In this document: positions 21,620 through 53,000 of the stretch, one piece after another
How the letters are laid out: each line of letters begins with the position of its first letter
Numbering within the stretch: position 1 is the first letter of the stretch
NCBI GenBank assembly: GCA_024704765.1
Contig: JAKMXF010000111.1
Coordinates: forward strand, 1,318,619-1,382,618
Direction: 5' to 3'
DNA from: Oopsacas minuta
Taxonomy: Eukaryota; Animalia; Porifera
Length of the DNA: 64,000 nt
The notes under the pieces: generated by a model
The model's input: only the letters and a program-made list of their open reading frames with translations
Database searches by the model: none
What the model was told of the DNA's origin: nothing
Made by a program: the position numbers and the translations under genes

Positions 21620-23156
21620 TTCTTTGTCTGTCAAATTTGATAATTCTGAATAATATCTACAAATATTAAAGGATTTTATGCGACCAGAATTGAGGTCCCA
21701 TTAAGGATTAGGATAAAATTTAATGTCGTTATTGTTAGTGACATTAAGTCTTCCAGAAAAATTTTGGGCCCGTTGTTGAGAAATGAGAACCACTGCTCTA
21801 GGCTTCTTGTGAGTTCAATATGCTATATGAGTTAAGAATTCTGTTATAGATAAATAATTTCAACAATTAGAATGATAGGATGATAGTACTGTAATTCAGT
21901 GTATGTTCGAAATGATCAAAATCGAACCCAAACCGGGATTCCAACTCTGAGCTTAGCTTTCAATATATAGAATATTGGAGGATTTCCTCAGAAACAAATA
22001 GTAAATTTAATACTCGTAATACGATTGCATAATTTATACTTTGATGATTTTGAGGATTGGGAGAGCATCGTCTATCAATTTTAAAAGATGGATCGGAATC
22101 TGATGTAATATTTTCTAAATAGATTCTGACCCCTTTCTAATATACAGCACCACATTGTCAGATAAAATTGAATTGCATATATTAAATCAACTAGAAACAC
22201 TCAATTCAAAATAACCAATGGCCAAATTGTGTATTGAATCCGTTCAAACGTTTCGTAACGCAATTTCCCTAAATTTTGACCCCCTCTCCCCCTGTGTCAC
22301 GCTTTTTCAACGTATGGTAATACAAAAAGACTGGGCCTGTCACACTTCGCATATCACCCCTCTTCTTGTAGTTTTACCGTTTGAACAGTCATTAATTACT
22401 AATATGAAGATATGTGCAGCAGGTCTGGAAATGCTTTTTGAAAATATTTTCTTTGTTCTACAAACCACGAAAATGAAAAACAATCATTCGTAGCCTTAGA
22501 TGGGTACCCTGAGATCTGTTATGTAATTCTCTAAGCCAGGACCCTTGACCAAGAAAATATTTTACACCAAAAATATTCGGGATTTGTAGACGTTCATTCG
22601 CGAATTTATCTATCACTGGAAAATGGGCCCCAAAATTTGTCCCTTCTGACCATTTTTCATTCTGGCCCTGGGAACAAAATTTTCGTGAAAGATCATCAAT
22701 ACAACTAAATCTATTAGCGAATGATGTAAACTGTAAATAAGCTATTTGAATCTGGTTTAACGAAGTTGCGCTGTGCGGTATTTTGAACATGTCGCATTTG
22801 CTTGCAACATTGCATGATAATAGAAACGTGTTCCATTTGCTTAAAATAGCATTGCATGAAATAACTACTACTTCATAGTTTTAAGCAAAAATGTTGGATG
22901 AAAGAAGTCTTATGCCAATTTGTTGCTTACAAATATCTTTGTGTTTCCTTGTTTCAAGCAACAATGCTGCAAGGACAGTCATGTGCAACCAATAGCATTT
23001 TGTATGGTGGCTCAATGTTTCCATTATTCATAGTTTCAATAAAGTAAAAGAATACTACTATGCCTGCAATATTGCAAGTTCTACATCATTTTGCATGTCA
23101 TTATCAACCCACTTGCCATAAATAGAAAATTAAACACAGATTCAAATCGTGATAAA

Positions 23157-24010
23157 ATGACCTCAAATTACAGAACATGTTTCCCAGTGCCCTGCTATTT
23201 TCTTACAACTAGCTTATCATTCATTGTATTAGGGCCTGGTTTTGGGTTCCAATCACAAGGTGCAAATGATTTGAAGAGTTCAAATCTCCTAGATGACTAC
23301 CAATTCGCTGCATTTTCAGGAATCTACTTTCTCACAGCTGCAATTAGTGGACTATTTGCTATGCCACTAATGTAACTGATTGGAAGAAGGAATGATATAC
23401 TTATAGCAGCAGTCCTATCAAGAACCGGTTATGTGTTATGCTAGGAGTAACAAGTATACCAGAAGTACTTATCTTGGTAAGGGCAGTCAATGGTTTTGGT
23501 TGTGGCATATCCATCCCCGTTTCAGTAATATACTTAAGTGAACTAGCACACAATAAAACCAGAGGAACTCATTTGAGCCTTAGTCGCTCCGGCATACTTA
23601 TCGGCATTATAGTTATGTGGCTCTAGCCTGAACTATGACACGCTCTCATTAATAGACGCTGGTTTATCAATAATGCAAAGTTTTATTATTGTTTGTGCCA
23701 TACACTCACACATACTTGCTGAGTAGGAACCTCAAGGATAGTGCATTGAGAACAATGAGGCGGCTACGAGCCAAAGATTATGACTCAGTAAAAGAAGTAC
23801 AAGAATGCATGATATGAATCATAGTTCAGAGTACTTATCTGGATAAATTAGTTCATTTGCTAAAACCCTGGAACCTGAAAGCATTTTTCTTAGTTAGCAC
23901 AATATTTTTCACTGAGCAAACTTCAGGCATTAATCTATTCGCAAACTATAACTCTGAAAATTTACAAAGTAGCGGGGCTGCAAAATTACTTGGGTTAGTT
24001 GTTCAGTGTT
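23157..24010 (+). pseudogene. MFS sugar transporter (GLUT8/Tret1-like) pseudogene, 3' truncated
   Basis: Fragments LGPGFGFQS, GLFAMPLM*LIGRR, RAVNGFGCG...VIYLSELA....RG and EQTSGIN, separated by several in-frame stops and frameshifts. Confidence 0.72.
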
Positions 24011-25465
24011 TTCCCAAAGAGTGTTACGCGCGTCAATTAACGCGCTTTCCTAGCTGAAAGACGCGTTTGGAATATCTAACCAGTTCTATAGCGGGGCAAT
24101 TTTTGTCCATATTCGTTCAGTTCCATAGAAACGAACCTTTATAAGCGAAGAGTGGGGAATGGAGGACACTTTATAGTAGTAATACCTAAGTTGACTAATT
24201 CATTGAAAAATCGTCAAGAATAATTCTTTCCCAATGTATACATTATTCTTTTTGAAGAGTTGATTAATTAATGGGTTTATACAATTCATAATGATATTGA
24301 ATAATATATGTCAGTGTCGCGAATTCTGAACCACTAGGTGGCTAGAGAAACTGTTCGTAATATAGAGAATTCATATTTATCAACTCGACTTAATACAAAT
24401 CCTATTTATGCATTAAAATTGGGGCCAGAAGGTTATTAATTCAAAATGAATTATTCATTTTTAACCTATTGATAATGAATTATTCATTATTCATGAATTA
24501 GTCAACTTAGAGCAATACCTTACACCATTATTTTAACCTCTGGGAATTTTGCAATAAAGTTCATTTAAATATCTATTTTTGTGCTAATTTTATAAATTAA
24601 TCATAAACATCCTATGATCACACAGTCTACGTATAAGATACGTAGTTTGTGTGATGATATGTATTTGTCGACAGTAAATTAGATACAAATAGTTTTTGAA
24701 CATTTTAGAATTTTTCAAAAGTTGTATAACCTTTATGATCTGTTCGGATTAGCAAGGGTCTACTGTATAGTGGTGAGGTCGGACATAGAATTTTCGCAAA
24801 ATTATCAGTATATCCATTAATTATCAGTATATAAGATATATACAATAAATTGATATAGTGTATCCAAATTTGGCTAAATAATTTCCCGCAAGGTATCCCA
24901 AGAGGCTTTGTCCGTTACTTAGTGTGGATGAAGTATTTATTATTTACTCACTGCGATTGTAAATATTTATTTCTCAAAGGTACGAGGCTGGCTTTTCAGG
25001 GTTGATATTATCACTATACCGAATTCATAGTAGATAACACGATTGCAATCCAATCAGTGTTAGCATCGCTATACTAAAATTCAAACTCTACAGTGTTTAT
25101 CCCTGTTGTTTTGATTGTAGCGATGTTACGTATTATTGTGGGTGTAGTTTCACTACAAGCAGAGAAAGTTATGTTTGTCTTGCTGCTGACACCACAATCC
25201 CTCAGGCACATAAAGAAGAGTTAGACTTTCATAAGACTGAGAGAAAGGTGTGCACTTTTTTCTGTGATTCATCCTGAATATGGAAACCCAAAGACTCAAA
25301 AGAAGAACATTTGTTCACATAATTATAGGTGGAAGTAAATTTATGTAAATATTAAGGTGATTGTTTATCATTGTCATAATTATAATGTATGCTTATTTGT
25401 ATATAATATATATTTTCTTATATTTACACAAGTTGAATATAATTCAGATAAACGTATTTACCCAA

Positions 25466-35032: not shown

Positions 35033-38000
35033 ATGCCTATTAAGAGAAAGCCTGGAGGAGGGCGTAAACCCAAAGTGAAACTCCTACCAGCTCAGGTGCT
35101 GCCGATTGGACAGCTGCTGACTGACCTTACCAAGAGGGGCTGGAGCTTGGGAGCAAAGGTGGGGATGGGAGGGTGTGGAGAGATATTCTTAGCAGGTAAT
35201 AAAAACAAATCAGTTTTAGGGATATATATATATATATTATTATTATATATTTAATCTCGTTTCTAGCTCCTTCAGGGAAACCTATTACTCCAGATCAAGC
35301 CTCTCATGTTATTAAAATTGTAAGACTTAACTAAACCAGAGTTGCACACGGGCTTCGGGCCGGCCAGGAAATACTCCCATTGTGATCAGCATTAAGCTGC
35401 TTAGCACAATTCCGCAGTCTCAAGATACTGTTTTGAATCGTCACCAGTTACCAATTGAGAATACTTAGGAGTAAATCGAACCATAGTTTCCCTGGGAAAT
35501 TTTGTTTGCGGGCTTTTTGCGGGTCGATTAATTCAATCGCGGACCGCGGTTGTAAATTTCGGCCCACGTGCAACTGAGCTGAACTGATTTAAGTTTCATA
35601 CTTATCTGCATAAGAATGCAACAACATTATTTCTCATAGGAACCTCATGCTAATGGTCCTCTCTTCTCTGAGCTCGCTTTCTATCACCGAGCTGCCAAAG
35701 CAGAAATGAGTTAGTTATATTACGAAATTTTATAATCAACTACAGTCCATTCTCTCTGATCCGAACAGCACTGTTCCAATTGCAAAATAAAATTTTCAGA
35801 TTAGTGAAATGCATTAAAATACGGATATGGACGAATGGCTACATATTGTACGATGAGTAAATTCTAGTACTACATGAAAATCATTCATGAACAATTCTGA
35901 TAATTACCTACTGGTTTAAAGTGATATGTGTATATATATAATCTACTGAATTTGATTATAAGTAAGCCAGAATAACATAAACAAGTAAGATACAACATCA
36001 TAGTGAGTGTATCCTATGATTATCTCTTGATTCGTCCCTAAACTTAATCTGTGTGCAATCCCTTGGAGGAATTCCATTGGCGATCGGTGAAGGTAACTAA
36101 GAACAAGATGGTCCGTCTTCATTAGCCGAATTCTTTGTTCGTTTAGTGGCTTAGCACTGTTAAAAATTTAGCTTGCTTTACCTCAACCATTCCTTGTCTC
36201 GTCTGATTACGTTAATCCATTTCCATATAGTAGGATGTGGTAACCAATGGTAGCATTATAGGCTCTGTGGCATGTTCTACAGCATTGGCTATACGAGGCA
36301 TCGTGATCTCAATGGGAAATAGAGGTGCATGTATTGTATATACTTGAGCAAAAAAGTTGAGGTGCTGTTTTGAAAGCTCCATCTGCTAGCCAAATATTGG
36401 ATGTTGTTAGCAGGTCACAGTTTTTCTGGGTCCCAAATATTAGAAATCTTGTTAGTTCAGGTCTGGAACCATATAATAGAAAGTTTTCCTCTTTAGCGGT
36501 TATCATGAACTCCTGAGGAATGGTAAGATCATGAAGACTTTCTGTTTGAACAGGAGCTATATCTAGTACCTGCCTTTCTCTACGAATGGTACGCTTCATA
36601 CTATCAAGTTTTGGTAGTTTTACAGCCGTTGAAGCAATAATTATTTCTAATTCGTCTCCAAGAATGTGATGTTTTGTGTTTGACGAGCTTTACGTTCCAT
36701 TCTATCCTTATTTGTATTGACAGCCAATATGTCTGGACTATGAAGGTGCTCTCAGCTACGAATTACAATTTCATTAATTTTAGTATGGAGCCTTGCTTTA
36801 CATAGTCTGGTTTTCTCGCATTACCAGTGTGTAACATATAACTCTCTGTTTATTATAGATGGAAGGCGGTTTCATGCTTCAGCCAATTATTATATGTTTA
36901 TGGTCTGTATACACAGAAATCAACTCATCACTAAATTTCAGATTGTACCATAGACCAAGGATGGAGTTGGTTAACCGATTTATGGTAACGGTTAACATTG
37001 GCTATCTATCAGCGGTTAACTAGTTAACCGACGTTACCATTGGTCAATAAAACAGAAGATTTCAATTGAAACACTTGTATAATTGGCATTTATATCAACT
37101 TATATCAATCTCAAAATAGGATTTTTCTATTTTTAAACTAAGAAAGATGCTTGTTCGATAGAATTAGGAGAAGAAATATATATTCATGAAATAATTGTAC
37201 TTTTTCCAGGGCTGGACACTTATATCATCATTTTTCACCAATCAATATCCCAGAAATGCAAAATATCCTAAATAGCCAATCCCAAAATTTAATAGCAGTT
37301 AGCTGATAATGACGGCGGTTAACGGAATCCAGCCCTGCATATACATTGAATGTTATGTATCTCTTATTCTTATTCTATAATATATTTCAATTGTATAGTT
37401 AAGAATTGGCAGCTTAGATATAAAGAAGCTACTTATGTGGGAGTACCTGCTTATATAGCAGAGGGATGGCATGAACTGAATGGGGATAGATGGAGGTTTA
37501 TGGTGATGGAGAGGTTTGGAGAAGATCTGGAGATGATATTCACTAAGCATGGAAGAATTTTCTCTCTACCTACAGTTTGTACTGTGGCCATTAGTCTGGT
37601 TAGATTAATTATTGGTTTATTTTAAATAGTAGATATCTTTAATACCTACGAAGAGGTCAAAGGGAGATGGTTTATTGACTGTCCGACCACGTAAATCTAG
37701 CTATCCGATTAACATGAAATTTGCGAATATGTATGTATACATCTGCTGTCTGATTTGTATCTGGAGACTATATTTCAGCCAATATAAATGATAGATGGCT
37801 GAAATTTGAATCACAGGTACCCCACAATATGCCAAATGTCATGACGTCATCATTACTATACAAAAATTTCGAGAAGTTTTAGAATTTCTTAATACACGAG
37901 GTACGAAGTGCCGAGATTACTAACCAAAAGCAACGCAAGTGCTCCAGTATTACCACAGAAGGCTATTAAATGGAATTTGGATGTGCTATGGATAATAAAA

Positions 38001-41000
38001 AAATTAACCTCGAGGCACGTAGTGCCGAAATATCCCGTCTCATAGCGACCCAAAAGCACTAAAAATGTAGCTGTTTCATACTTATGATAAAACGTGCGAC
38101 ACAGCTCAAGGATGCTTCCGCCCGTCGCGCAGCGACCTAGCAAGAGAAGCGCCTAGTACTTAATTATATTCAATTATAGTTAAACAGTTTGGAATATCTT
38201 CACAACAACGAATATGTACATGCTGATATCAAGGGTGCTAACCTACTCGTTGGAAGAACTAAGTCTAAGAGACATGAGGTAGGCCAATTTGATCACAATT
38301 TTATTCACCTCTATACACAAATACCTTACTTGATTATAATTAATTACTACAGGTGTATTTGGTTGACTACGGACTGGCGTATAGATATTTAGCTGATGGA
38401 AAGCATAGAGAGTATCAAGAAGATCCCAGATGTGCTCATGACGGTACCATTGAGTTTACAAGTAGAGATGCACATAAAGGAGTTCGTAAGTCTTACTTTT
38501 GTTCATATGTATTGTATAATTGTATATTTATCTCTACACATATAGTGAGGAGCCCTGGAATATTCCACTCCCAAGAAATTCTTCCGTACTGTAATTATTA
38601 TCAGCAGTTTCATTTCACATCCACTGTACCGCTGTATGTACGTATGTATTGTAAGGTACTTGATGCCCTCATAAAATGATATTAATTCACTAGCGTATAC
38701 AAAGCTGCGCCATGTAATGCCCCGGTGGTGCTAGTGCACTTCACTAGATGTGCTCCAGTAGTCCACCAAGGCTGGCTACGTCATTGTATTGACTTTAATT
38801 TAAGGAAATCCTGGGGAAATGAATTGTTTGGTAGAATTTGGATTTTTTCGAAGAGAACAAGAAACTTCTAACTCAGCGAACCCTGACGTTTATCCTCTTG
38901 ATCTTAGTAAATTCTGGGACTAGGCCACTAGGAGATGCTAAATTCGGAATAAATATTTGCTTAATTAGTCAATAGATTTATGTAATTTACCAGCGATTAT
39001 TATCATAATTGTTTCACAGAAGTCTCTGAACAATCAGCACATTCCAAAGTTTATACTTTGGGCGGGAACAGCTCCAGCAACCGTCACGCAGTGGTTGAAT
39101 TGCTTTAGATGGTCTGTGACTCAAAAAATAGAGAAACGACACTAGTATCTTTATTTTAAATTCTCCGGTTAATTGTGAACCCTGCTTAATGGGACAAATT
39201 GCCTTGAACCGATTTGGCTCCATTAAGCCGAGTTGACTGTGGTTGTGTTTTGGTACACATACTTAATTGCTGAGGTTTAACGCATCATTCCGGGCCAAAA
39301 CATTGTTATAGCACCCAAGGAATTTGCTGAAGCTTGTGCTTGACCCTTAAATTATAATTATATAATTGTAAATTATGAGATGAAAAAGGTTATTTGGAAT
39401 ATACATATATAGGTAGTAACATTCGCCTAGATACGCAAGCATGATAAGGGCATGCAAATATATCTACGTTTACAAAACCATATACCATACCAGTAATTAT
39501 AATTACCACAAAGGTCTGAATACGAGAGGCAGATTGTCAGAAGGTGACAATATTACTTTCACAGTGATATCTATATCATAGCCATCTTGAAGAGATACTT
39601 GAAATTTCTTAAGTAGCTTTGCTGTAATGATCTTTATCTCAGACATGGCGAAATTCTGTCCAATACAATTCCTAGAACCAGCAGAAAATGGAATGAATGC
39701 ATACGGATGATGTTTCTCTATATTTTCACCATTGAATCTTGATGGGTCAAATTTATCGGGATCAGGCCAGTGTTTAGCATTTTTGTGGATCAGGGAAGGT
39801 GAGATATCTAAGCTCACATTAGCAGGAATCTTATGACCATCAATTGTAAATGGTTTGTTTAGCATTTTCGAAATAAACATTACTGGAGGATAGAGTCTCA
39901 TCGTCTCTTTTATGAAACAAGTTAGATAAGTAAATTTAGCGATATCTTTCCATTCTATCTCATCTCTTCCTCCCATCACACTTAATACTTCTTCTCTACA
40001 CTTCTCTTGTAGTTCTGGGTATTTAGCTAGGTGGTAGAACACGAATGAACTTGCTGCTCCAGTCGTATCGTGACCAGCAAATACAAACGTATTGAGTTCA
40101 TCAATGATTTCTTTTTGAGTTAAACCGTTCCCTTCCTCATCTCGTGACCTCGTGAGAAGATCCAGCATATCGTAGTCTGATTTATCTGATTCTTCTCTGG
40201 GGTTCTCTTCTCTCTCTTGAATGAGTGACACGATATACTGTTTGGTCATTTTAGCTCCTCTAGCGAATTCTTTTCCCACATTTTTTCTGTAAAATATAAT
40301 GTCAAACATGCTAAAAAATGAACTAAATCTTTCCTCCATTCCTTGTCTGATCTTCTCTAGTCCCTCAACATACGTCATCTCCCTGCTGTTTGTATCTATA
40401 TTGAGCTGTAGATCTGAACCTTTAGAGCATATACAATTGAGGATAACTTCTAGTGTCATGTTATGGATAAGTGGAACAAACTCTATTGGATCTTTCCCAT
40501 TGCTATCTCGATTGATGACTTCTATCATCCTATCACTGGACTTATTCATTATCTTGACGAAGTTTATTAAACTTTGATAATAGAATGTCGGAGTTAATAA
40601 TTTCCTGTTCCTCTTCCAAATTGCTCCTTCACTGAAAACCAATCCATTTCCCAACCAGGGTGTCACCATGTAAACAAATGTTTTATCCTTTGATTCTACC
40701 TGATTGAATATCTGCTGTGCTACCTCTGGTCCTGTTACCATAATACTGAAAATTGAACCATATATCATTCTACCAAATCTGGGATAATCCTTTATTGTGT
40801 TTTCCAATTTTGCGAGATATTTTCTATCAATTCTTGCGACTTTCATTCCGAAAATCGGATGATCTAGTTTAGGTCCTGGTAGCCTCCATCTTATATAACT
40901 ATATCGTGTCACGAAGCGGAATAACTTGGCGAGTAAGTATAACCCGTAACTCAGAAGTAGAATCCAGCACAGTGAGTACAAGCTTGTCTGATCATATAAA

Positions 41001-44000
41001 TATTTTGTTACAGTATTTAGCATTTTCTACTATTTAATACTATTTGAATGATTTCACAAAGTTTTATTTCACATAAATGCTATTGCAAGACAACTAATGG
41101 ATATTTATATTGAAATATAGTTACTAATTATATTTGGGTGTAAAGCTTATTATTTAATTTGATATCTTATATCTTACATCAAGTTATAATGGAAAGTAGC
41201 AAATCAAATTAAAGGACAGCCACAGTGGAACTTTACCCTCTACGGCCGTCGAAATTTTTAGTAAAATATATTGCTTTGAGCATGCACCTAGTACTATATT
41301 TAATAGCTCACTACATGGTGGATAATCATTGAAATACTTTACGGTACCTCATCTCTAATACTAAGTATATAATTTTTGAAAAGCATGCTGTGATGTAGAA
41401 ACCCAAACGATGAATGCATATGCATATTGTAAATTGAACCTCTGAGCAACAGTTTACTCTGATTCCGAAAATCTTAGTTAGATTATATTTGAGTTTTCCA
41501 CCTTCATTGTTATACTTACTTGCTATTCGGCTAAGGTTGTAGTTATACATTTTACCGTAGACTAGTATAAAGTTCATTATTTACGTAGCAAACATTCACT
41601 AAGTTCATTCGAGTAGTAGCTTGCAGTTACTAATTAGTAATTACTTAATTAACTAACCTATATTTAGGATATCAGAATGTATATCTATGCTACGTCAATA
41701 ATGAACTAGACACTATGGTAAAATTAGTAACATATTCACAATTAATATCCTGCGTTACATCATGTACCAGATTTGATGGGATATAAAAGGTAGTAACGAA
41801 TCAGAAATCATTCAAATAGTATTAAATAGTAGAAAATGCTAAATACTGTAGCAGAATATTTATATGATCAGACAAGCTTGTACTCACTGTGCTGGATTCT
41901 ACTTCTGAGTTACGGGTTATACTTACTCGCCAAGTTATTCCGCTTCGTGACACGATATAGTTATATAAGATGGAGGCTACCAGGACCTAAACTAGATCAT
42001 CCGATTTTCGGAATGAAATACATAAAAATTGATAAAAAATCTCTCACAAATTTGGAAAACACAATAAAGGATTATCCCAGATTTGGTAGAATGATATATG
42101 GTTCAATTTTCAGTATTATGGTAACAGGACCAGAGGTAGCACAGCAGATATTCAATCAGGTAGAATCAAAGAAAAGTACATTCAATTATATGATGACACC
42201 CTGGTTGGGAAATGGATTGGTTCTCAGTGAAGGAGCAATTTGGAAGAGGAACAGGAAATTATTAACTCCGACATTCTATTATCAAAGTTTAATAAACTTC
42301 GTCAAGATAATGAACAAGTCCAGTGATAGGATGATAGAAGTCATCAATCGAGATAGCAATGGGAAAGATCCAATAGAGTTTGTTCCACTTATCCATAACA
42401 TGACACTAGAAGTTATCCTCAATTGTATATGCTCTAAAGGTTCAGATCTACAGCTCAATATAGATACAAACAGCAGGGAGATGACGTATGTTGAGGGACT
42501 AGAGAAGATCAGACAAGGAATGGAGGAAAGATTTAGTTCATTTTTTAGCATTTTTGACATTATATTTTACAGAAAAAATGTGGGAAAAGAATTCGCTAGA
42601 GGAGCTAAAATGACCAAACAGTATATCGTGTCACTCATTCAAGAGAGAGAAGAGAACCCCAGAGAAGAATCAGATAAATCAGACTACGATATGCTGGATC
42701 TTCTCACGAGGTCACGAGATGAGGAAGGGAACGGTTTAACTCAAAAAGAAATCATTGATGAACTCAATACGTTTGTATTTGCTGGTCACGATACGACTGG
42801 AGCAGCAAGTTCATTCGTGTTCTACCACCTAGCTAAATACCCAGAACTACAAGAGAAGTGTAGAGAAGAAGTATTAAGTGTGATGGGAGGAAGAGATGAG
42901 ATAGAATGGAAAGATATCGCTAAATTTACTTATCTAACTTGTTTCATAAAAGAGACGATGAGACTCTATCCTCCAGGAATCCTTGTTTCGAAAATGCTGA
43001 ACAAACCATTTACGATTGATGGTTATAAGATTCCTGCTAATGTGAGCTTTGATAACTGGATTTACTTTATCCATAGAAATGCTAAACACTGGCCTGATCC
43101 CGATAAATTCGACCCATCAAGATTCAATGATGAAAATATAGAGAAACATCATCCGTATGCATTCATTCCATTTTCTGCTGGTTCTAGGAATTGTATTGGA
43201 CAGAATTTCGCCATGTCTGAGATAAAGATCATTACAGCAAGGCTAATTAAGAACTTTCAAGTATCACTCCAAGATGGCTATGATATAGATTACAAGGTGA
43301 CTATAGTATTGTCACCTTCTGACAATCTGCCTCTCGTATTCAGGCCTTTGTAGAAGTAACTGTATTACATAAATATAGTATGGTATTAATGTAAGTATGT
43401 GCAGTGAACTCAAATTCTAACGTAGTGCTCAGACTCAAGAATTAAAGGAAGATTTTTGGATTTTAGCTTTTATGATAATAAACGGGTTATTCTATTAATC
43501 GGGATTCACCTTACTTTAGAATTCTATTAATAAACAATATGTAAAAGCCCTCAATTATTTCTCACCTGTCTGTAATCCGAGTCCAAACTGAAAAACCGAA
43601 CCAGCGTCTCAGTGAATAGTGTTCCCGCGAATTGTTTTAACTCGAACATGATTCCTTAGAGAATAATGTTACCCCACATATACCTAGTGAATAATGGAAT
43701 ACGCTGAATCCAATTATTCAATTATTATATCAAAGTATTGCGAATATTTAGTATTGCTTCGGTGTATTTTTAAAGTAAACAAATTTCAAAACAGTCTCAG
43801 AAACTTGGTTCAAGTGTTTTACTGGGTTAATCGAGTACGCTGATTTCAAATTTAGCACTTTTAAGTTACTCCACATGTAAGGAATTATTGTTCCTTTAAA
43901 AGTAGTACTAGGCACGAAGTGCGTTCGTCATTTTTCAGCCTCATATAGGGCCGGTACTCAAACACGGGACAGGCCAAAATGCCTCGAATTTATTAGAATA

Positions 44001-47000
44001 TATCCTTCCAACAGTTGAAATGTTATCTACTTACTCAATTATGAAATTCCAACATAGAACCTAGAAATTGGTTTACTTACTCACAAATATGTTACTAGGC
44101 AAATCTTATGTTGGATATCTATCATGTACTAATACTTTTGAATTATAAGTACACATTCTCGAAAAGTGTGCAGTAAGGCCATTATGTGAAATGAGCAACC
44201 AATTTCTATTCAATTAAATGGACAATACAATTGCCCATTTCACTCATTGAGCAATTTGTTTGCAAAATGCATGAAATGAGCAATTTCATGATTTGCGTGT
44301 AACATAAATACAGATTAATTGCGTTTAAATAGCAAAGAATATGCAGCCTTCGTGTTTATTGTCAATTGATGTATATTAGTTATCATCAAAGATCATTTGT
44401 CTATCGGGATTTAGCATATTGGGGTTTTTGTCGTTTGGGTATTGTAATTTAATGGACAAAATCACCCGATTTCAACTGTATTATTATTTCCAACATGGGA
44501 TTTCTTAGTAACATCAAATAACTTAACTTTTTCATTTGTGAAAGTATTTCTACATTCTATCTTGGAATTCATCATTGAGTAACTGCTAGAATGACATAAT
44601 ACATTCGAGGCATTAACAGTGCAAAAAGGTTTGATTGTTCATCCTCTAAAGTCCTAGTGGTAACGTTATGGGAACACTTTTCCTTAGTAACTATGGAGGA
44701 ACACTAGCATACTATTCACTAGAGGGAACCATACTCGCTAGGTATATGTTCGGGGTACATTAGTCTCTAGGGAATCATGTTCGAGCGAACATAATTCAAG
44801 GCATTATTCACTGTGACGCCGTTTCGGTTTTTAGATTGGACTCGGTCTATAGACAGGTTAGAAATATTTGAGGGCTTTCACATTTTGTTTATTAATATAA
44901 TTATATAATACAGTGGATCCCGATTAATAGAATAACCCGTTTATTATAAAAATTTACAATCCAAAACTCTTTCCTTTAATTCTTGTACTATAAAACTCGA
45001 GACCTGAGCACTTCGTTAGAAAGAGAGCTGACTGTACGTACTTACACATATACTATCTAATATATTTATGTTATAGAATTACTTCTATAAAGGCCTGAAT
45101 ACGATGCGCAGATTGTCAGAAGGTGACAATACTACTTTCACAGTGATATCTATATCATAGCCATCTTGAAGAGATACTTGAAAGTTCTTAATTAACTTTG
45201 CTGTAATGATCTTTATCTCAGACATGGCGAAATTCTGTCCAATACAATTCCTAGAACCAGCAGAAAATGGAATGAATGCATACGGATGATGTTTCTCTAT
45301 ATTTTCACCATTGAATCTTGATGGGTCAAATTTATCGGGATCAGGCCAGTGTTTAGCATTTTTGTGGATCAGGGAAGGTGAGATATCTAAGCTCACATTA
45401 GCAGGAATCTTATGACCATCAATTGTAAATGGTTTGTTTAGCATTTTCGAAATAAACATTACTGGAGGATAGAGTCTCATCGTCTCTTTTATGAAACAAG
45501 TTAGATAAGTAAATTTAGCGATATCTTTCCATTCTATCTCATCTCTTCCTCCCATCACACTTAATACTTCTTCTCTACACTTCTCTTGTAGTTCTGGGTA
45601 TTTAGCTAGGTGGTAGAACACGAATGAACTTGCTGCTCCAGTCGTATCGTGACCAGCAAATACAAACGTATTGAGTTCATCAATGATTTCTTTTTGAGTT
45701 AAACCGTTCCCTTCCTCATCTCGTGACCTCGTGAGAAGATCCAGCATATCGTAGTCTGATTTATCTGATTCTTCTCTGGGGTTCTCTTCTCTCTCTTGAA
45801 TGAGTGACACGATATACTGTTTGGTCATTTTAGCTCCTCTAGCGAATTCTTTTCCCACATTTTTTCTGTAAAATATAATGTCAAAAATGCTAAAAAATGA
45901 ACTAAATCTTTCCTCCATTCCTTGTCTGATCTTCTCTAGTCCCTCAACATACGTCATCTCCCTGCTGTTTGTATCTATATTGAGCTGTAGATCTGAGCCT
46001 TTAGAGCATATACAATTGAGGATAACTTCTAGTGTCATGTTATGGATAAGTGGAACAAACTCTATTGGATCTTTCCCATTGCTATCTCGATTGATGACTT
46101 CTATCATCCTATCACTGGACTTATTCATTATCTTGACGAAGTTTATTAAACTTTGATAATAGAATGTCGGAGTTAATAATTTCCTGTTCCTCTTCCAAAT
46201 TGTTCCTTCACTGAAAACCAATCCATTTCCCAACCAGGGTGTCATCATATAAACAAATGTTTTATTCTTTGATTCTACCTGATTGAATATCTGCTGTGCT
46301 ACCTCTGGTCCTGTTACCATAATACTGAAAATTGGACCATAAATCATTCTACAAAATCTGGGATAATCCTTTATTGTGTTTTCCAATTTTGCGAGAGATT
46401 TTCTATCAATTCTTGCGACTTTCATTCCGAAAATTGGATGATCTAGTTTAGGTCCTGGTAGCCTCCATCTTATATAACTATATCGTGTCATGAAGCGGAA
46501 TAACTTGGCGAGTAAGTATAACCCGTAACTCAGAAGTAGAATCCAGCACAGTGACTCATACCATTTATCAAGTTAAATGTAAAATAGCAAATCAAATTTA
46601 GAATAGCTACAGTGGAACCTTTGCAATGATTCTGAAAAGCATACATAGGTTTGGACATTGGTCCCTCATTAACCCTCAGAGGGCAGAATTTAGGATTTTC
46701 CTTAAATAAGCTTGCGTCATCTTCACACCTCGAACATTTTTATTGGAAATTTAGGTCCAAACCTATGCAATGTATGTTAGCGTATTTGTGGAACTTTCAG
46801 TCATTTCGATCTCTTTGATTCCTCAAAACTCAGTGCTATTAGAGGCAGGGACGGATTGTCATGAAATAACCAAGGCTGCAGCGATTGTGTAGAGCCTGCA
46901 GTTATTCAGTATAGTATATGTTAATTGGTTACATAGTTAGTACTTATAATCGTAGATTCTCAGTGTAACGTTATTGCTAAATACTTCACGTTAATTACAG

Positions 47001-50000
47001 TGATATTATTAAACTACATATATTGGTATTTCATAACAGGATCATGGGGTGTGGAGGCCGCTGGGCACCAGCAGAGGTCCCCTCCAACCGCAATAGATCG
47101 CTGTTGTTCATATCTACCGATGCCAAAAGAAGTTTGAGATAGCAGGGACATTTTTGCGAAAAGCTATCTCCCTCTTCTTTTCATTTTTGGTCTTCGTTTT
47201 GGCGCTCCGCTACTACAACGTCGAGTATCCATGATAAACTAATTACGGTGCATGGTGATTGATATGGAAATACAGTGGAACCTGATTAACAACCACCTCT
47301 ATATAGCGGCCACGTGTACATAACAGCCACTTTTGGTCAGTTTGAATAAATATTAAATTATTTCTACATAGGTCATGGCTCATGGGTTATTATTATTAGT
47401 TACTGTATCGTACATTAATGGGTTTTCTCACCCCTTCACTCCTTTTTACATACATATTTTTGTTTAACTCCACTAATTAATTACGTATATGTTGAGTCGC
47501 CTATTAATTAAACAGTTAAATTTTATAGTGTTATTGGTCGCTACCCGACATTGAATAGCCTTCTGTGGTGATACTGGAAAGTTATGTCGCTTTTGGTTAG
47601 TAATCACGGCACTTCTTAATTCTTGCCACTGGTATTAAGAAATTCTGAAAATTTTTAAATTTGGATAATTTAGATTTTTTGTACAGTCATGATGACGTAA
47701 TAATCCCATCATGAGTATGTATTTGGTCAGAATCATGACGTCAGGAGTTTCTCACTTTGAGGGGTATCTGTGCATTCAAATTTCGAACTTCGATCATGTA
47801 TATTGGCTGAGCAGTGGATAATAATGTGATTTTTCAAAAATACAAAGGTGACAATGACGTCATAATTTCGTCATGTGTGTGAATTTTCGTCCAAGATATC
47901 CGAGCCAGGCCAAAAAATACCACTGTGTGCCAAAAATCAACCCTGGGGGTCTTCCAGGTTCTTCAATCAATTCTGGACATACAAACATATATACAGATTA
48001 ATTGCGTTTTATAGTATAGATCAGTGGTTCTCAACCTGGGGTCCGCAGCCCTAAAATGTTTTCGTTATGTTTATTGGCAGGGGTCCGCGGACCCCATAAA
48101 ATGGACCCAAAAGGTCCGCGGAAGAAAAAAGGTTGAGAACCAGTGGTATAGATGATAGATTATTTCCATTAATTGGAATCATGATACATTCTTGTGTTAC
48201 AATGATTAATAAAATCAAGTGAATTTTGATATGTCAATTTGATTCAATTCATTTGCGTAAAAGAAGAATTTTCATTCCATTACTTAACATGAGAGCCACT
48301 CCATAAGCGGAATATAATGTTATTGTCATTCTTAAACCAATTGAATTACTAATTAGTAATTACTTAATTAACTAACCTAAATTTAGGATATCAGAATGTA
48401 TATCTATGCTACGTCAATAATGAACTAGACACTATGGTAAAATTAGTAACATATTCACAATTAATATCCTGCGTTACATCATGTACCAGATTTGATGGGA
48501 TATAAAAGGTAGTAACGAATCAGAAATCATTCAAATAGTATTAAATAGTAGAAAATGCTAAATACTGTAGCAGAATATTTATATGATCAGACAAGCTTGT
48601 ACTCACTGTGCTGGATTCTACTTCTGAGTTACGGGTTATACTTACTCGCCAAGTTATTCCGCTTCGTGACACGATATAGTTATATAAGATGGAGGCTACC
48701 AGGACCTAAACTAGATCATCCGATTTTCGGAATGAAAGTCGCAAGAATTGATAGAAAATCTCTCGCAAAATTGGAAAACACAATAAAGGATTATCCCAGA
48801 TTTGGTAGAATGATTTATGGTCCAATTTTCAGTATTATGGTAACAGGACCAGAGGTAGCACAGCAGATATTCAATCAGGTAGAATCAAAGAATAAAACAT
48901 TTGTTTACATGATGACACCCTGGTTGGGAAATGGATTGGTTTTCAGTGAAGGAACAATTTGGAAGAGGAACAGGAAATTATTAACTCCGACATTCTATTA
49001 TCAAAGTTTAATAAACTTCGTCAAGATAATGAACAAGTCCAGTGATAGGATGATAGAAGTCATCAATCGAGATAGCAATGGGAAAGATCCAATAGAGTTT
49101 GTTCCACTTATCCATAACATGACACTAGAAGTTATCCTCAATTGTATATGCTCTAAAGGTTCAGATCTACAGCTCAATATAGATACAAACAGCAGGGAGA
49201 TGACGTATGTTGAGGGACTAGAGAAGATCAGACAAGGAATGGAGGAAAGATTTAGTTCATTTTTTAGCATTTTTGACATTATATTTTACAGAAAAAATGT
49301 GGGAAAAGAATTCGCTAGAGGAGCTAAAATGACCAAACAGTATATCGTGTCACTCATTCAAGAGAGAGAAGAGAACCCCAGAGAAGAATCAAATAAATCA
49401 GACTACGATATGCTGGATCTTCTCACGAGGTCACGAGATGAAGAAGGGAACGGTTTAACTCAAAAAGAAATCATTGATGAACTCAATACGTTTGTATTTG
49501 CTGGTCACGATACGACTGGAGCAGCAAGTTCATTCGTGTTCTACCACCTAGCTAAATACCCAGAACTACAAGAGAAGTGTAGAGAAGAAGTATTAAGTGT
49601 GATGGGAGGAAGAGATGAGATAGAATGGAAAGATATCGCTAAATTTACTTATCTAACTTGTTTCATAAAAGAGACGATGAGACTCTATCCTCCAGTAATG
49701 TTTATTTCGAAAATGCTAAACAAACCATTTACAATTGATGGTCATAAGATTCCTGCTAATGTGAGCTTAGATATCTCGATTGGCCTAATCCACAGAAATG
49801 CTAGTCACTGGCCTGATCCCGATAAATTCGACCCATCAAGATTCAAGGATGAAAATATAGAGAAACATCATCCGTATGCATTCATTCCATTTTCTGCTGG
49901 TTCCAGGAATTGTATTGGACAGAATTTCGCCATGTCTGAGATAAAGATCATTACAGCAAGGCTACTTAAGAAATTTCAAGTATCTCTTCAAGATGGCTAT

Positions 50001-53000
50001 GATATAGATATCACTGTGAAAGTAGTATTGTCACCTTCTGACAATCTGCCTCTATTATTCAGCCCTTTGTAAAATTTCAATTATTTTGACTAATCTATGT
50101 GGTGTTTATCATAAAAGAGGGTTAGTTGCCCTTGTTTCACCTGTGTATTCATGTGAATTATCACAGCTATATATTATTATGCTATGTTACGTATTTATTT
50201 CCTATATTTCTTCATTCGACATATTATTGCATTAATCAGGATCATATAAATTATATAATATCCTCATTGACAGCGTTTTCTAGGACACTCTTGAGAGTCT
50301 AAGTCTGAGTCTGAGTGTTTTGACGCGATATCAAGTTGTTGATTGGGATATTTCTGGAATTAGCTAAGAATATTGCTTCAATCTGTAGTAAACATAAATA
50401 CAATTAGTGGGTTTACTCTAGCGTCATTGCAATTGTATGCTCAAAGATCCGGGATACGAAATTTCCGGAACAAAAAATCGGTTACCAAAGGTCTGGATAC
50501 AAAGAAAATGCAAAGTTAATTACATTCAATTGATATACAGTAGACTCTCGTTAATACATACACCAGGGGCTGCCGAAATTCGTACACCTTATCCTGAGTA
50601 ATTTACATTGAAAATGCATCGAAGGGGACTGATAAAGTGTACAATGTTTGTACTCCTTATCCGGAGTTCCGCCTTAACCATGTTCGTATTAACGAGACTC
50701 TACTGTACAATGCTGTCGGCACAGATTGTACTTGCAACTTAACATTGTTACTTCAAATCGCCAAGTTTATCTTAAAAGAATACGTACGCAAAGTGGCAAA
50801 AACCTTTAAATGTGTATTTACGAATTGCGCGAATACAGTCTCGTTAATACGAACACGATTAAGGAGTACAAATTTGTACACCTTATCAGTCCCCTTCGAT
50901 GCCTTTTCAATGTAAATTACTTCGGATGATGAGTACGAATTTTTTGGTAGTCCCCTGGTGTACGTATTAACGAGAGTCTATTGTATGCTGCGAGGCAAGG
51001 TAATGAGCAAAATATCTAAAAGTACAATTTTGCCGACAACATTCTATATCAATTGAATATATTCAACCTTGTACTATTAATAATGGGATACGGACACTTC
51101 ACTACATTGTTAGTGTGGCTTTCTAAAGATGCCATATCACTCATGGCATGATTTACCAGTTGTATTTATTACACATTAAAGCTTCGAGAATGAGACTCTT
51201 ACGAAGCATGCATTGCTTGCTTGTCCTACGCGGCTGCGATAACCATTCATGTCCACCTAGGCGCTACCATGCCATGAGTGACGCGACGCAAAAGCTTCTC
51301 ACTATGCTACAGTACAGTACAAATAATACACATAATATAATCAGCAATTAGAAGCAATATTCTTAATCTCTTCCAGTTGGACTAATGCATACTACACAAT
51401 TCGTACAGATGCATTTCCCCCTTTGTAATTATGTTATGTTGTTTCATGCTTCCAGCGCGCCGCGGGGTGAACAATAGTGCAATTTTAATGTATTTCTTTT
51501 GGATTATTTTGCCTCTCTGTTTCTTGTACTCTTTCATGCGTCAAGTCTCAAAAATTCCCGATTTCGAATGGAATTTTAATTGGTCAAAGTGATTAAATAT
51601 TGTTATTTGTTGGGTTGTTATACTTACATTATTGATATTTGTTGTCACTAGACTACATAGACTAATTCCATGAACGTGAAGAATTAGAATTTCATCTTCA
51701 AAGAATATAATGGTTTTCTGATTGAATCGGCATTTTGGGGGGAAAAAACCCGATTCTATTGGGTTGGTCTATTATTACATCCTCTGATACAATATTCACT
51801 TAGGGCCATCTCGCAGAGGAGACTTGGAAATTCTCGGATATGTACTGGTTCAGTGGGCGTGTGGAGTTCTACCCTGGGAGAGTAAGATTACTAATAAAGA
51901 AGTCGTAGCACAGGAGAAAGAGAAGTGAGTAATCTAGCATATTTAATAGTTTCTATTACTTTGAGAGAATTACCTAATGAGATTTCTTTAATTTGAATTT
52001 GCGAACACTTATATCCCTATTTGTTAGGTTTATGAAGAGTCCAGAATTACATCTAAAAAAACTTTTCCCCTCTGGAGGTACTCCATCTTGCTTGCTAGGA
52101 TATTTCTTACAAATATCAAAGCTCGGATATCTACAACAGCCTGATTATGACAAGCTAAGAAACTTATTTTTGAAAGAACTCACAAACCTTAAGATTAACC
52201 CTAGGTCTACATCACATCTAGATTGGCTGCAATCAGCTACACCTGCTAAGCGTAAGAGTCAGTCTGGGCTTATAGAGATGTCTCCTATAGGGAAATCTGC
52301 AGGTATGTAGTACATAATTTCTTTGAGTAACAGGATGCTGGTTAGAAAACTGCTGTTTGCCGATGAAGTATGGGGTTGGCATTTTAACTGCGTAACGTAA
52401 TCGTGGACCATCTCCACACAAGTTCTATATAAAATGACCTACAGCGAGTAATATAGCCTTATAATCACGCATGCTATTGATTTATTGCTTTTCCTTTCAA
52501 ATGATTACCTCTACTACTTACGTACTAGCGCCCTCTCCTGAGAATACGTCCCGAGTGTTGCACTGATTGGCACAAGGTTCGCCACGACACACCCTGCCCT
52601 GATACTAAAAATTAAAAGAATAAGATTGATGTAATTATAATTGACAATGAGAATAAATGACCGATAAGATCATGATAACTCAATAAGCTATTTGCATAAC
52701 TAATTACTAACAATTAGTTGTGCTAGCTCTCAGTAGAGATTACTAATACATTGTACTAAGCTAAAGGTTTGTAATAGAGATCGGGTTGTAGCTATCACTG
52801 TGTCTGGTTCTGACACTCAGGGGGTTTGTCTGGAGTTCTCCCTGGAACAAAATCCGGGTCATTGTCGGAATTGTACTCCCCCTCTCCTTCCCCTGACTCT
52901 ACACTCTCTTCCTGATCCGACTCAACCTGATCTATCTCCCCAGTGAAGTATAGAACTGCTCGAGAGATAACTTTCTCTTTTATTATCTCTCCCAGTGTGA

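Follow-up and report, generated by a model that had tools for sequence, protein, structure and literature searches.

What keeps four neighbouring genes nearly identical over most of their length, while a few short segments of one of them remain widely different? The question is raised by a 64,000-nucleotide (nt) stretch of DNA from the glass sponge Oopsacas minuta (assembly GCA_024704765.1, contig JAKMXF010000111.1, positions 1,318,619 to 1,382,618 of the forward strand), called the window hereafter. Between 39.5 and 50.1 kb of it lie four copies of a cytochrome P450 gene (c1 to c4), all single-exon genes, arranged as two head-to-head pairs that stand tail to tail to each other. A reading made from the sequence alone had proposed that gene conversion keeps the scaffold of these enzymes uniform and reshuffles their specificity segments, so that the array would act as a combinatorial P450 diversifier. 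The analysis reported here retains the homogenisation by conversion but not the reshuffling. The preferred explanation, to which we give a probability of about 0.7, is that the four intronless CYP4-clan P450 genes form an old inverted array in concerted evolution by interlocus (ectopic) gene conversion, in which four short tracts of c2 have been spared.

The residue counts on which the sequence-only reading was built are correct. Copies c2 and c4 differ at exactly 33 residues, of which D280N alone lies within residues 135-380 and none within residues 1-61, and the five blocks at residues 62-72, 113-117, 381-384, 405-411 and 486-490 read as claimed, residues 405-411 occurring in three versions among the four copies. 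All three possible groupings are present, namely copies 1+2 against 3+4 at residues 90 and 134, 1+3 against 2+4 at 414, 432 and 469 (to which residue 409 has to be added), and 1+4 against 2+3 at 471 and 473. At the nucleotide level, 76 of the 1464 comparable sites of the coding sequence (CDS) are variable; 36 are private to c2 and 14 are two-by-two informative. Every one of the 36 c2-private sites falls into four tracts of 33-98 nt (T1 to T4, Table 1), which together span 15% of the CDS; the remainder of the CDS has none. Such clustering is not expected by chance, random placement of the differences never attaining the observed largest gap or gap variance (p<=1e-4). Taken over 1548 nt, c1 is 98% identical to c4 and 96% identical to c2. 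Since c2 is the only copy to carry its set of blocks, it is referred to as the alpha type, and c1, c3 and c4 as the beta type.

The evidence that the uniform part of the genes has been overwritten by conversion comes from several sides. A permutation test of our own, which applies the logic of Sawyer and GENECONV to the polymorphic sites, detected significant fragments in the nucleotide alignment of the four CDSs: the sum of squared lengths of concordant fragments (SSCF) gave p=1e-4, and the longest concordant fragment, shared by c1 and c3 over 28 sites, p=2e-4. The 14 informative sites include all three partitions, so that trees cannot agree along the gene. Moreover, they are ordered along it (p=0.02). 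With the grouping written in the order c1 c2 c3 c4, such that 0011 stands for copies 1+2 against 3+4, sites of type 0011 occupy CDS nt 261-400, those of type 0101 nt 480-1406, and those of type 0110 nt 354, 1411 and 1419.

A second line of evidence is the contrast between the CDSs and their surroundings. Similarity from copy to copy ends at or near the CDS borders, with the exception of the 5' flanks of c2 and c4 and the 3' flanks of c2 and c3. The latter are homologous over about 340 nt and, from right behind the stop codon, show 84.7% identity over 333 nt, a divergence that serves as a yardstick of the age of the duplication. A piece upstream of c1 and c3 is 87% identical between the two. 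In the core of the gene (codons 135-380), the number of synonymous substitutions per synonymous site (dS, Nei-Gojobori method) is just 0.007-0.021 in all six pairs. Measured against the 84.7% identity of the flank, these values mean that the CDSs are much younger than the founding duplication.

Constraint is ruled out as the cause of the uniform core because synonymous sites are identical too. Nor would constraint alone suffice, since the membrane anchor and the F-G region, which evolve fast among relatives, are also uniform in the array. In a search covering the 61.46-Mb assembly (365 contigs), the only close relatives outside the array were two degraded pseudogene loci, which were used as outgroups for polarising states; both carry stops and rearranged pieces, and both are more diverged inside the block regions than outside them. 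When polarised in this way, shared derived states link c1 with c3, c3 with c4, c2 with c4, c1 with c2, and c2 with c3, each at different places of the gene. Since the pairing of copies changes with the place, there must have been several exchanges with different partners, in direct as well as inverted orientation. Taken together, homogenisation of the four CDSs by interlocus gene conversion, i.e., concerted evolution, is well supported.

Even a damaged copy has taken part in this process. The homology of c3 begins at codon 17, the first 16 codons together with the start codon being gone. In comparison with c1, about 190 nt are deleted, corresponding to CDS nt 1-48 and some 150 nt upstream (window 46492-46621), and past the break positions 41178-41234 on the c1 side match 46567-46621 on the c3 side. 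The longest open reading frame (ORF) of c3 opens at the ATG of codon 38, which was made by the change V38M just behind the membrane anchor, and a stop closes the frame upstream. The remaining 468-codon frame is intact, and c3 is still a partner in conversion, as the tract shared with c1 attests.

What, then, are the four tracts of c2? Between c2 and c4, the blocks have a dS of 0.20 and a dN (nonsynonymous substitutions per nonsynonymous site) of 0.27, as compared to 0.027 and 0.011 outside the blocks, and the blocks hold more than their share of synonymous differences (p=0.0013). All eight c2-private nucleotide sites of T1 are in nonsynonymous codons; purely synonymous c2-private changes occur within the tracts at codons 116, 388, 393, 477 and 478. 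Going by the outgroups and relatives, derived states belong to the beta type in most of T1, at H397 and at residues 117 and 130, and to c2 at residues 405-411 and 486-490. Because derived states are thus found on both sides, neither alpha nor beta is simply a recent import. The block dS of about 0.2 matches the divergence of the c2/c3 flanks, and the simplest reading of these substitution patterns is that the tracts would be unconverted remnants of the original divergence between alpha (c2) and beta (c1, c3 and c4).

The position of the tracts in the protein was mapped on an AlphaFold 2 (AF2) model built from 100 sequences, with a mean predicted local distance difference test score (pLDDT) of 89.8. 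An earlier model from 14 sequences, which had a mean pLDDT of 62 and was low exactly in the blocks, was discarded. Three of the variable segments fall into substrate recognition sites (SRSs): SRS1, in the B-B'/B'-C region, receives block 113-120 and residue 130; block 381-384 follows the Glu of the ExxR motif at a distance of 8-11 residues, which by its offset we take to be the place of the SRS5 contacts of CYP3A4 and CYP2B; and SRS6 receives block 486-491, in the strand and turn of beta4. The loop preceding helix A and the first turns of this helix are covered by block 62-72. Residue 397 and block 405-411 map to beta2-2 and beta1-3, which are not classical SRSs. In a model of CYP4F2 built on CYP4B1, the loop before helix A belongs to the outer binding pocket, and the same modelling paper counts the pre-A loop, the B' helix, the I helix and the C-terminal loop among the pocket elements.

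The claim that the blocks sit at substrate-contact sites is partly supported: of the 24 c2-private residues, 12 are located in SRS1, SRS5 and SRS6 where 4.6 are expected (circular-shift p=0.015), and the other half is spread over beta1-3, beta2-2, helix A and the pre-A loop. If all variable residues are considered, 14 of 44 fall in SRSs against 8.5 expected (p=0.13), and not one residue of SRS2, SRS3 or SRS4 varies among the four copies. The positions at which the array varies also rank as the most variable in a set of nine relatives taken from other assemblies; no circular shift does as well (p=0.002).

As to the nature of the enzymes, their membership in the P450 superfamily is clear. The c2 protein matches Pfam PF00067 over residues 49-484 (E=2.1e-100, 337 bits for a cut-off of 22.8); F446, G449, R451, C453 and G455 of the Cys-ligand loop as well as E373 and R376 of the K helix are invariant across the alignment, and the I helix contains A316-G317-H318-D319-T320-T321, which fits the (A/G)G-x-(D/E)-T-T motif. 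By the rule of nomenclature, a CYP4 protein shares more than 40% amino-acid identity with members of the family. Compared with named CYP4 proteins of vertebrates and invertebrates, the array proteins show 28-38% identity and do not reach this value; the one named protein to match at 40% is an O. minuta paralogue that bears the label 'CYP4B1-like'. The nearest solved structure is rabbit CYP4B1 (PDB 5T6Q and 6C93), with a sequence match of E=5e-83 over residues 40-504, and CYP4B1 also provides the best Foldseek matches of the AF2 model (template modelling score 0.85-0.91).

With the rabbit enzyme the array proteins share the P450 fold, the Cys-ligand loop and ExxR, but their identity to it is only 33-37%, and they differ from it in an I-helix residue. 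In most CYP4 enzymes, an I-helix Glu (E310 in CYP4B1) is ester-linked to the 5-methyl group of the heme. This Glu is absent from all four copies, which have Ala316 instead (window 42781-42783 in c2), and from the sponge relatives. Ala316 is thereby the natural counterpart of the engineered E310A mutant of CYP4B1 (crystal 6C93). Judged by these sequence comparisons, the data support a clan-4 affinity only, and the array genes would not be CYP4 in the strict sense of the family.

How the array may have come to its present state can be described as follows. Non-reciprocal copying between copies, in direct and in inverted orientation, would repeatedly overwrite the CDSs and bring them to 99-100% identity over most of their length, synonymous sites included, whereas the non-coding flanks would stay about 15% diverged. 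The four tracts of c2 would escape overwriting and retain synonymous and nonsynonymous divergence at the level of the flanks. Their survival would most likely be due to selection against conversions that erase a second substrate specificity, and the rejection of heteroduplexes across mismatched patches may help. The array would then encode two types of enzyme, alpha (c2) and beta (c1, c4 and the truncated c3). The mosaic itself, the signal of conversion, the difference between CDSs and flanks and the place of the tracts in the structure are shown directly; that selection maintains the tracts and that the tracts alter substrate preference we infer.

Several points weigh against this account. 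The ratio dN/dS (omega) is 1.3 in the blocks and 0.4 outside, but positive or diversifying selection is not demonstrated, since the block value is not significantly above 1 (p=0.38). The contrast in nonsynonymous to synonymous changes between the blocks and the rest is weak (p=0.096), and the limits of the blocks were chosen after the amino-acid differences had been seen. The limits of the SRSs were likewise set by ourselves, from model elements and motif offsets in CYP3A4 and CYP2B numbering. With just four tracts, and half of the c2-private residues outside the classical SRSs, the co-location of tracts and SRSs in the model is suggestive. Finally, a hybrid SPAdes/Pilon build could have erased low-level differences in the core.

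The idea that conversion diversifies the array combinatorially, moving specificity cassettes from copy to copy so that new P450 combinations arise, draws on the three site groupings, on the three versions of residues 405-411, and on a case in a relative species. There, proteins P0003 and P0004 do not differ for 185 residues, after which six differences follow in the SRS6 hairpin. P0009, whose contig appears to be that of P0004, divides exactly into three segments (P0003, P0004, P0003) with zero private changes, and bears the SRS6 version of the other protein. This would be the only clear block swap seen and the sole real hint of shuffling, but the three proteins may come from the same genome, a haplotig or an assembly chimera. 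In the array itself, shuffling should give mixed block versions, yet only c2 carries one of the sets: the four main blocks are two-state and fully linked (c2 against c1, c3 and c4), with zero recombinant block sets among the four copies. The incompatible groupings concern single sites (residues 90, 134, 471 and 473) or small patches outside the main blocks, and most sites of type 0101 are accounted for by the single c1-c3 tract. The net effect is a loss of diversity, with three beta copies, and not a gain. The diversifier is for these reasons unlikely here, and a dedicated diversification machinery is not supported, none being indicated. We likewise hold it improbable, on a wider scale, that the hexactinellid subfamily evolves by exchange of short substrate-contact cassettes, with conversion also making new combinations of SRS1, SRS5 and SRS6 for selection to act upon; if this were true, the P0009 mosaic and the three versions of residues 405-411 would be traces of such exchange.

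Other explanations dispense with remnants or with conversion altogether. The source of the c2 tracts could be a diverged sequence external to the array (a pseudogene, or a paralogue absent from the assembly) that donated them by short-patch conversion. The subfamily does have pseudogene fragments (contig C68 and positions 982557-983537 of contig C111), and the C68 fragment has the c2 state at about 10 of the 15 c2-private sites of T1 and T2. However, such sharing is equally expected if c2 retains ancestral states, both fragments have many private differences inside the tracts, so that neither is a recent donor, and the assembly contains no other paralogue above 40% amino-acid identity. An external donor thus appears very unlikely. 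Still less probable is a history without conversion, in which the copies duplicated recently and the contact loops of c2 then underwent either bursts of positive selection or clustered multi-nucleotide mutation. Nonsynonymous changes do dominate the blocks, with 8-9 of them and no synonymous one in T1, and the blocks are fast-evolving in the relatives and pseudogene outgroups as well. Yet a recent c2/c3 duplication cannot be reconciled with flanks that are about 15% diverged as far as the stop codon; the tracts contain purely synonymous c2-private changes; the Sawyer-type test gave a significant result, and the incompatible partitions follow an order along the gene; and the outgroups reveal derived changes on both the alpha and the beta side.

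The least probable of all is that the near-identical core is mostly an artefact of assembly and polishing, created by de Bruijn repeat collapse, self-correction of reads, or majority bases introduced by Pilon from multi-mapped reads. If the assembly is the published one of O. minuta, it was made from Canu-corrected PacBio and Illumina data by SPAdes, scaffolding, gap filling and Pilon, with DNA of different individuals. The self-correction by Canu and the hybrid use of SPAdes (k up to 99) and Pilon on such DNA would favour an artefact, and the 740-nt core exceeds a 150-nt read. Nevertheless, singleton and doubleton differences persist in the core at CDS nt 480, 606, 717, 838 and 888, each copy has its own flanks and spacers, c3 has a deletion of its own, and another assembly has proteins with a like mosaic. 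Sequences 15-20% apart could not have collapsed into one, so that at most low-level differences were lost. The qualitative result therefore stands, given the five persisting core differences, the unique flanks and this uncollapsible divergence. The exact degree of core identity rests on the assembled sequence and is hence less certain than the qualitative pattern. Independent assemblies of the copies were looked for in the 90% cluster, which contains just the four annotated models and an unrelated 42-aa (amino acid) Logan fragment.

The same genome also appears to contain a replicate of the homogenised-core pattern, judging from the coding and flanking sequences of a tandem pair of P450 genes on contig C11. 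Their CDSs differ at 27 of 1491 nt, the upstream flanks are 83% and the downstream flanks 94% identical, and 3 of the 12 amino-acid differences are at codons 119-124, in the B' region.

The closest precedent for concerted evolution of this kind is found in primates, where conversion acts across the CYP2D6, CYP2D7 and CYP2D8 genes and the SRSs keep paralogue-specific sequence (Yasukochi and Satta 2015, PMC4419802). In that family, trees from SRS and non-SRS parts disagree (PMC4419802), and fast evolution of SRSs is documented in CYP4 and CYP2 genes. Both systems have neighbouring paralogues that are homogenised and SRS segments that are kept distinct. Unlike the CYP2D genes, which are in direct orientation, the sponge genes are intronless, inverted and of the CYP4 clan, only SRS1, SRS5 and SRS6 together with two non-SRS segments escape, and the contrast is sharper, with a core 99-100% identical and one copy set against three.

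Two other systems invite comparison. In the human Y-chromosome palindromes, intrachromosomal conversion maintains the near-identity of the arms while the spacer is preserved, and the head-to-head/tail-to-tail layout of the array similarly permits conversion without deletion. In the array, however, identity is confined to the CDSs, the flanks having diverged, and the direct-repeat pairs c1-c3 and c2-c4 are also linked. Templated diversification, as in the conversion of chicken immunoglobulin genes by pseudogenes and in antigenic-variation cassettes, is the way in which a diversifier would work. Short-tract conversion could make mosaics here in principle, and the genome contains pseudogene relatives, but there is no expressed acceptor with a library of silent donors, there are only two, linked sets of blocks, and the direction is that of homogenisation.

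No new mechanism is thus revealed, the same logic being known from primate CYP2D. The value of the array resides in its being a very clean natural case of homogenising conversion set against retained specificity-determining segments in an enzyme family of the detoxification type, in an early-branching animal with a compact genome and in intronless genes, which make the tracts easy to read. It also offers a ready-made chimera design, i.e., an identical scaffold in which four short segments differ, suited to the mapping of specificity in a CYP4-clan enzyme without a covalent heme link.

Table 1. Coordinates of the P450 array, its tracts and related features. Positions refer to the window unless another contig or residue numbering is given; structural elements are those of the AF2 model.
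Feature	Position	Strand	Remarks
P450 copy 1 (c1)	39503-41023	-	intact ORF, 506 aa, beta-type blocks; from ORF list and translation
P450 copy 2 (c2)	41836-43353	+	intact ORF, 505 aa, sole alpha-type copy
P450 copy 3 (c3)	45085-46554 (homologous part); longest ORF 45085-46491	-	N-terminally truncated, beta-type
P450 copy 4 (c4)	48555-50072	+	intact ORF, 505 aa, beta-type blocks
c1-c3 conversion tract, c1 side	39617-40417	-	CDS nt 607-1407, 801 nt, one mismatch
c1-c3 conversion tract, c3 side	45196-45996	-	28 successive polymorphic sites concordant
Longest stretch identical in all four copies	42724-42976 (on c2)	+	CDS nt 889-1141
Tract T1	42019-42051	+	codons 62-72, CDS nt 184-216; loop before helix A and start of helix A
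Tract T2	42174-42223	+	codons 113-130, CDS nt 339-388; B-B' loop, B' helix, B'-C loop (SRS1)
Tract T3	42977-43074	+	codons 381-413, CDS nt 1142-1239; SRS5/beta1-4, beta2, beta1-3
Tract T4	43266-43303	+	codons 477-490, CDS nt 1431-1468; end of beta3-3 through beta4 hairpin (SRS6)
c2 5' flank	41627-41835	+	209 nt, 99.5% identity with c4 5' flank (48346-48554); 62% further upstream
c2 3' flank	43354-43693	+	inverted homologue of c3 3' flank (44732-45084); 84.7% identity, indels
Helix A	residues 67-77		AF2 model
Helix B	residues 99-108		AF2 model
B' helix	residues 117-124		AF2 model
Helix C	residues 133-147		AF2 model
Helix I	residues 303-334		AF2 model
Helix K	residues 365-377		ExxR 373-376; AF2 model
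beta1-4	residues 383-387		AF2 model
beta1-3	residues 404-408		AF2 model
beta4 hairpin	residues 486-494		strands 486-488 and 492-494; AF2 model
Degraded pseudogene relative (L015/L018)	contig C68, ~21900-24540		91% nt identity over CDS nt 1-661
Degraded pseudogene relative (L005)	contig C111, 982557-983537		78% nt identity to part of CDS
Second P450 pair (L006/L007)	contig C11, 622614-626593		tandem; 496 aa, 40% identity with c2

The deposited gene models of c1, c2 and c3 (P0001, P0122 and P0123) begin at Met95 and comprise 411-412 aa. They leave out the membrane anchor, the PGP hinge and block 62-72; a full-length annotation (505 aa) exists for c4 only. Every copy contains an antisense ORF of 92 codons in its homogenised core (40299-40577, 42282-42560, 45878-46156 and 49001-49279). 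Its recurrence is probably a by-product of the identical sequence, and nothing marks it as a gene. GC-biased conversion was considered and rejected, the GC content at third codon positions of the P450 genes (0.34-0.36) being not above that of neighbouring genes.

The ORFs around the array belong to ordinary eukaryotic genes, namely those for NAP, Sec16, FTHFS, mitofilin and carnitine acyltransferase. Downstream of c1 and in the c3-c4 spacer, the segments 37775-37972 and 47549-47810 form an inverted pair of 78-83% similarity, which is possibly a dispersed repeat. Directly downstream of c4, about 450 nt at 50535-50986 are self-complementary (71%).

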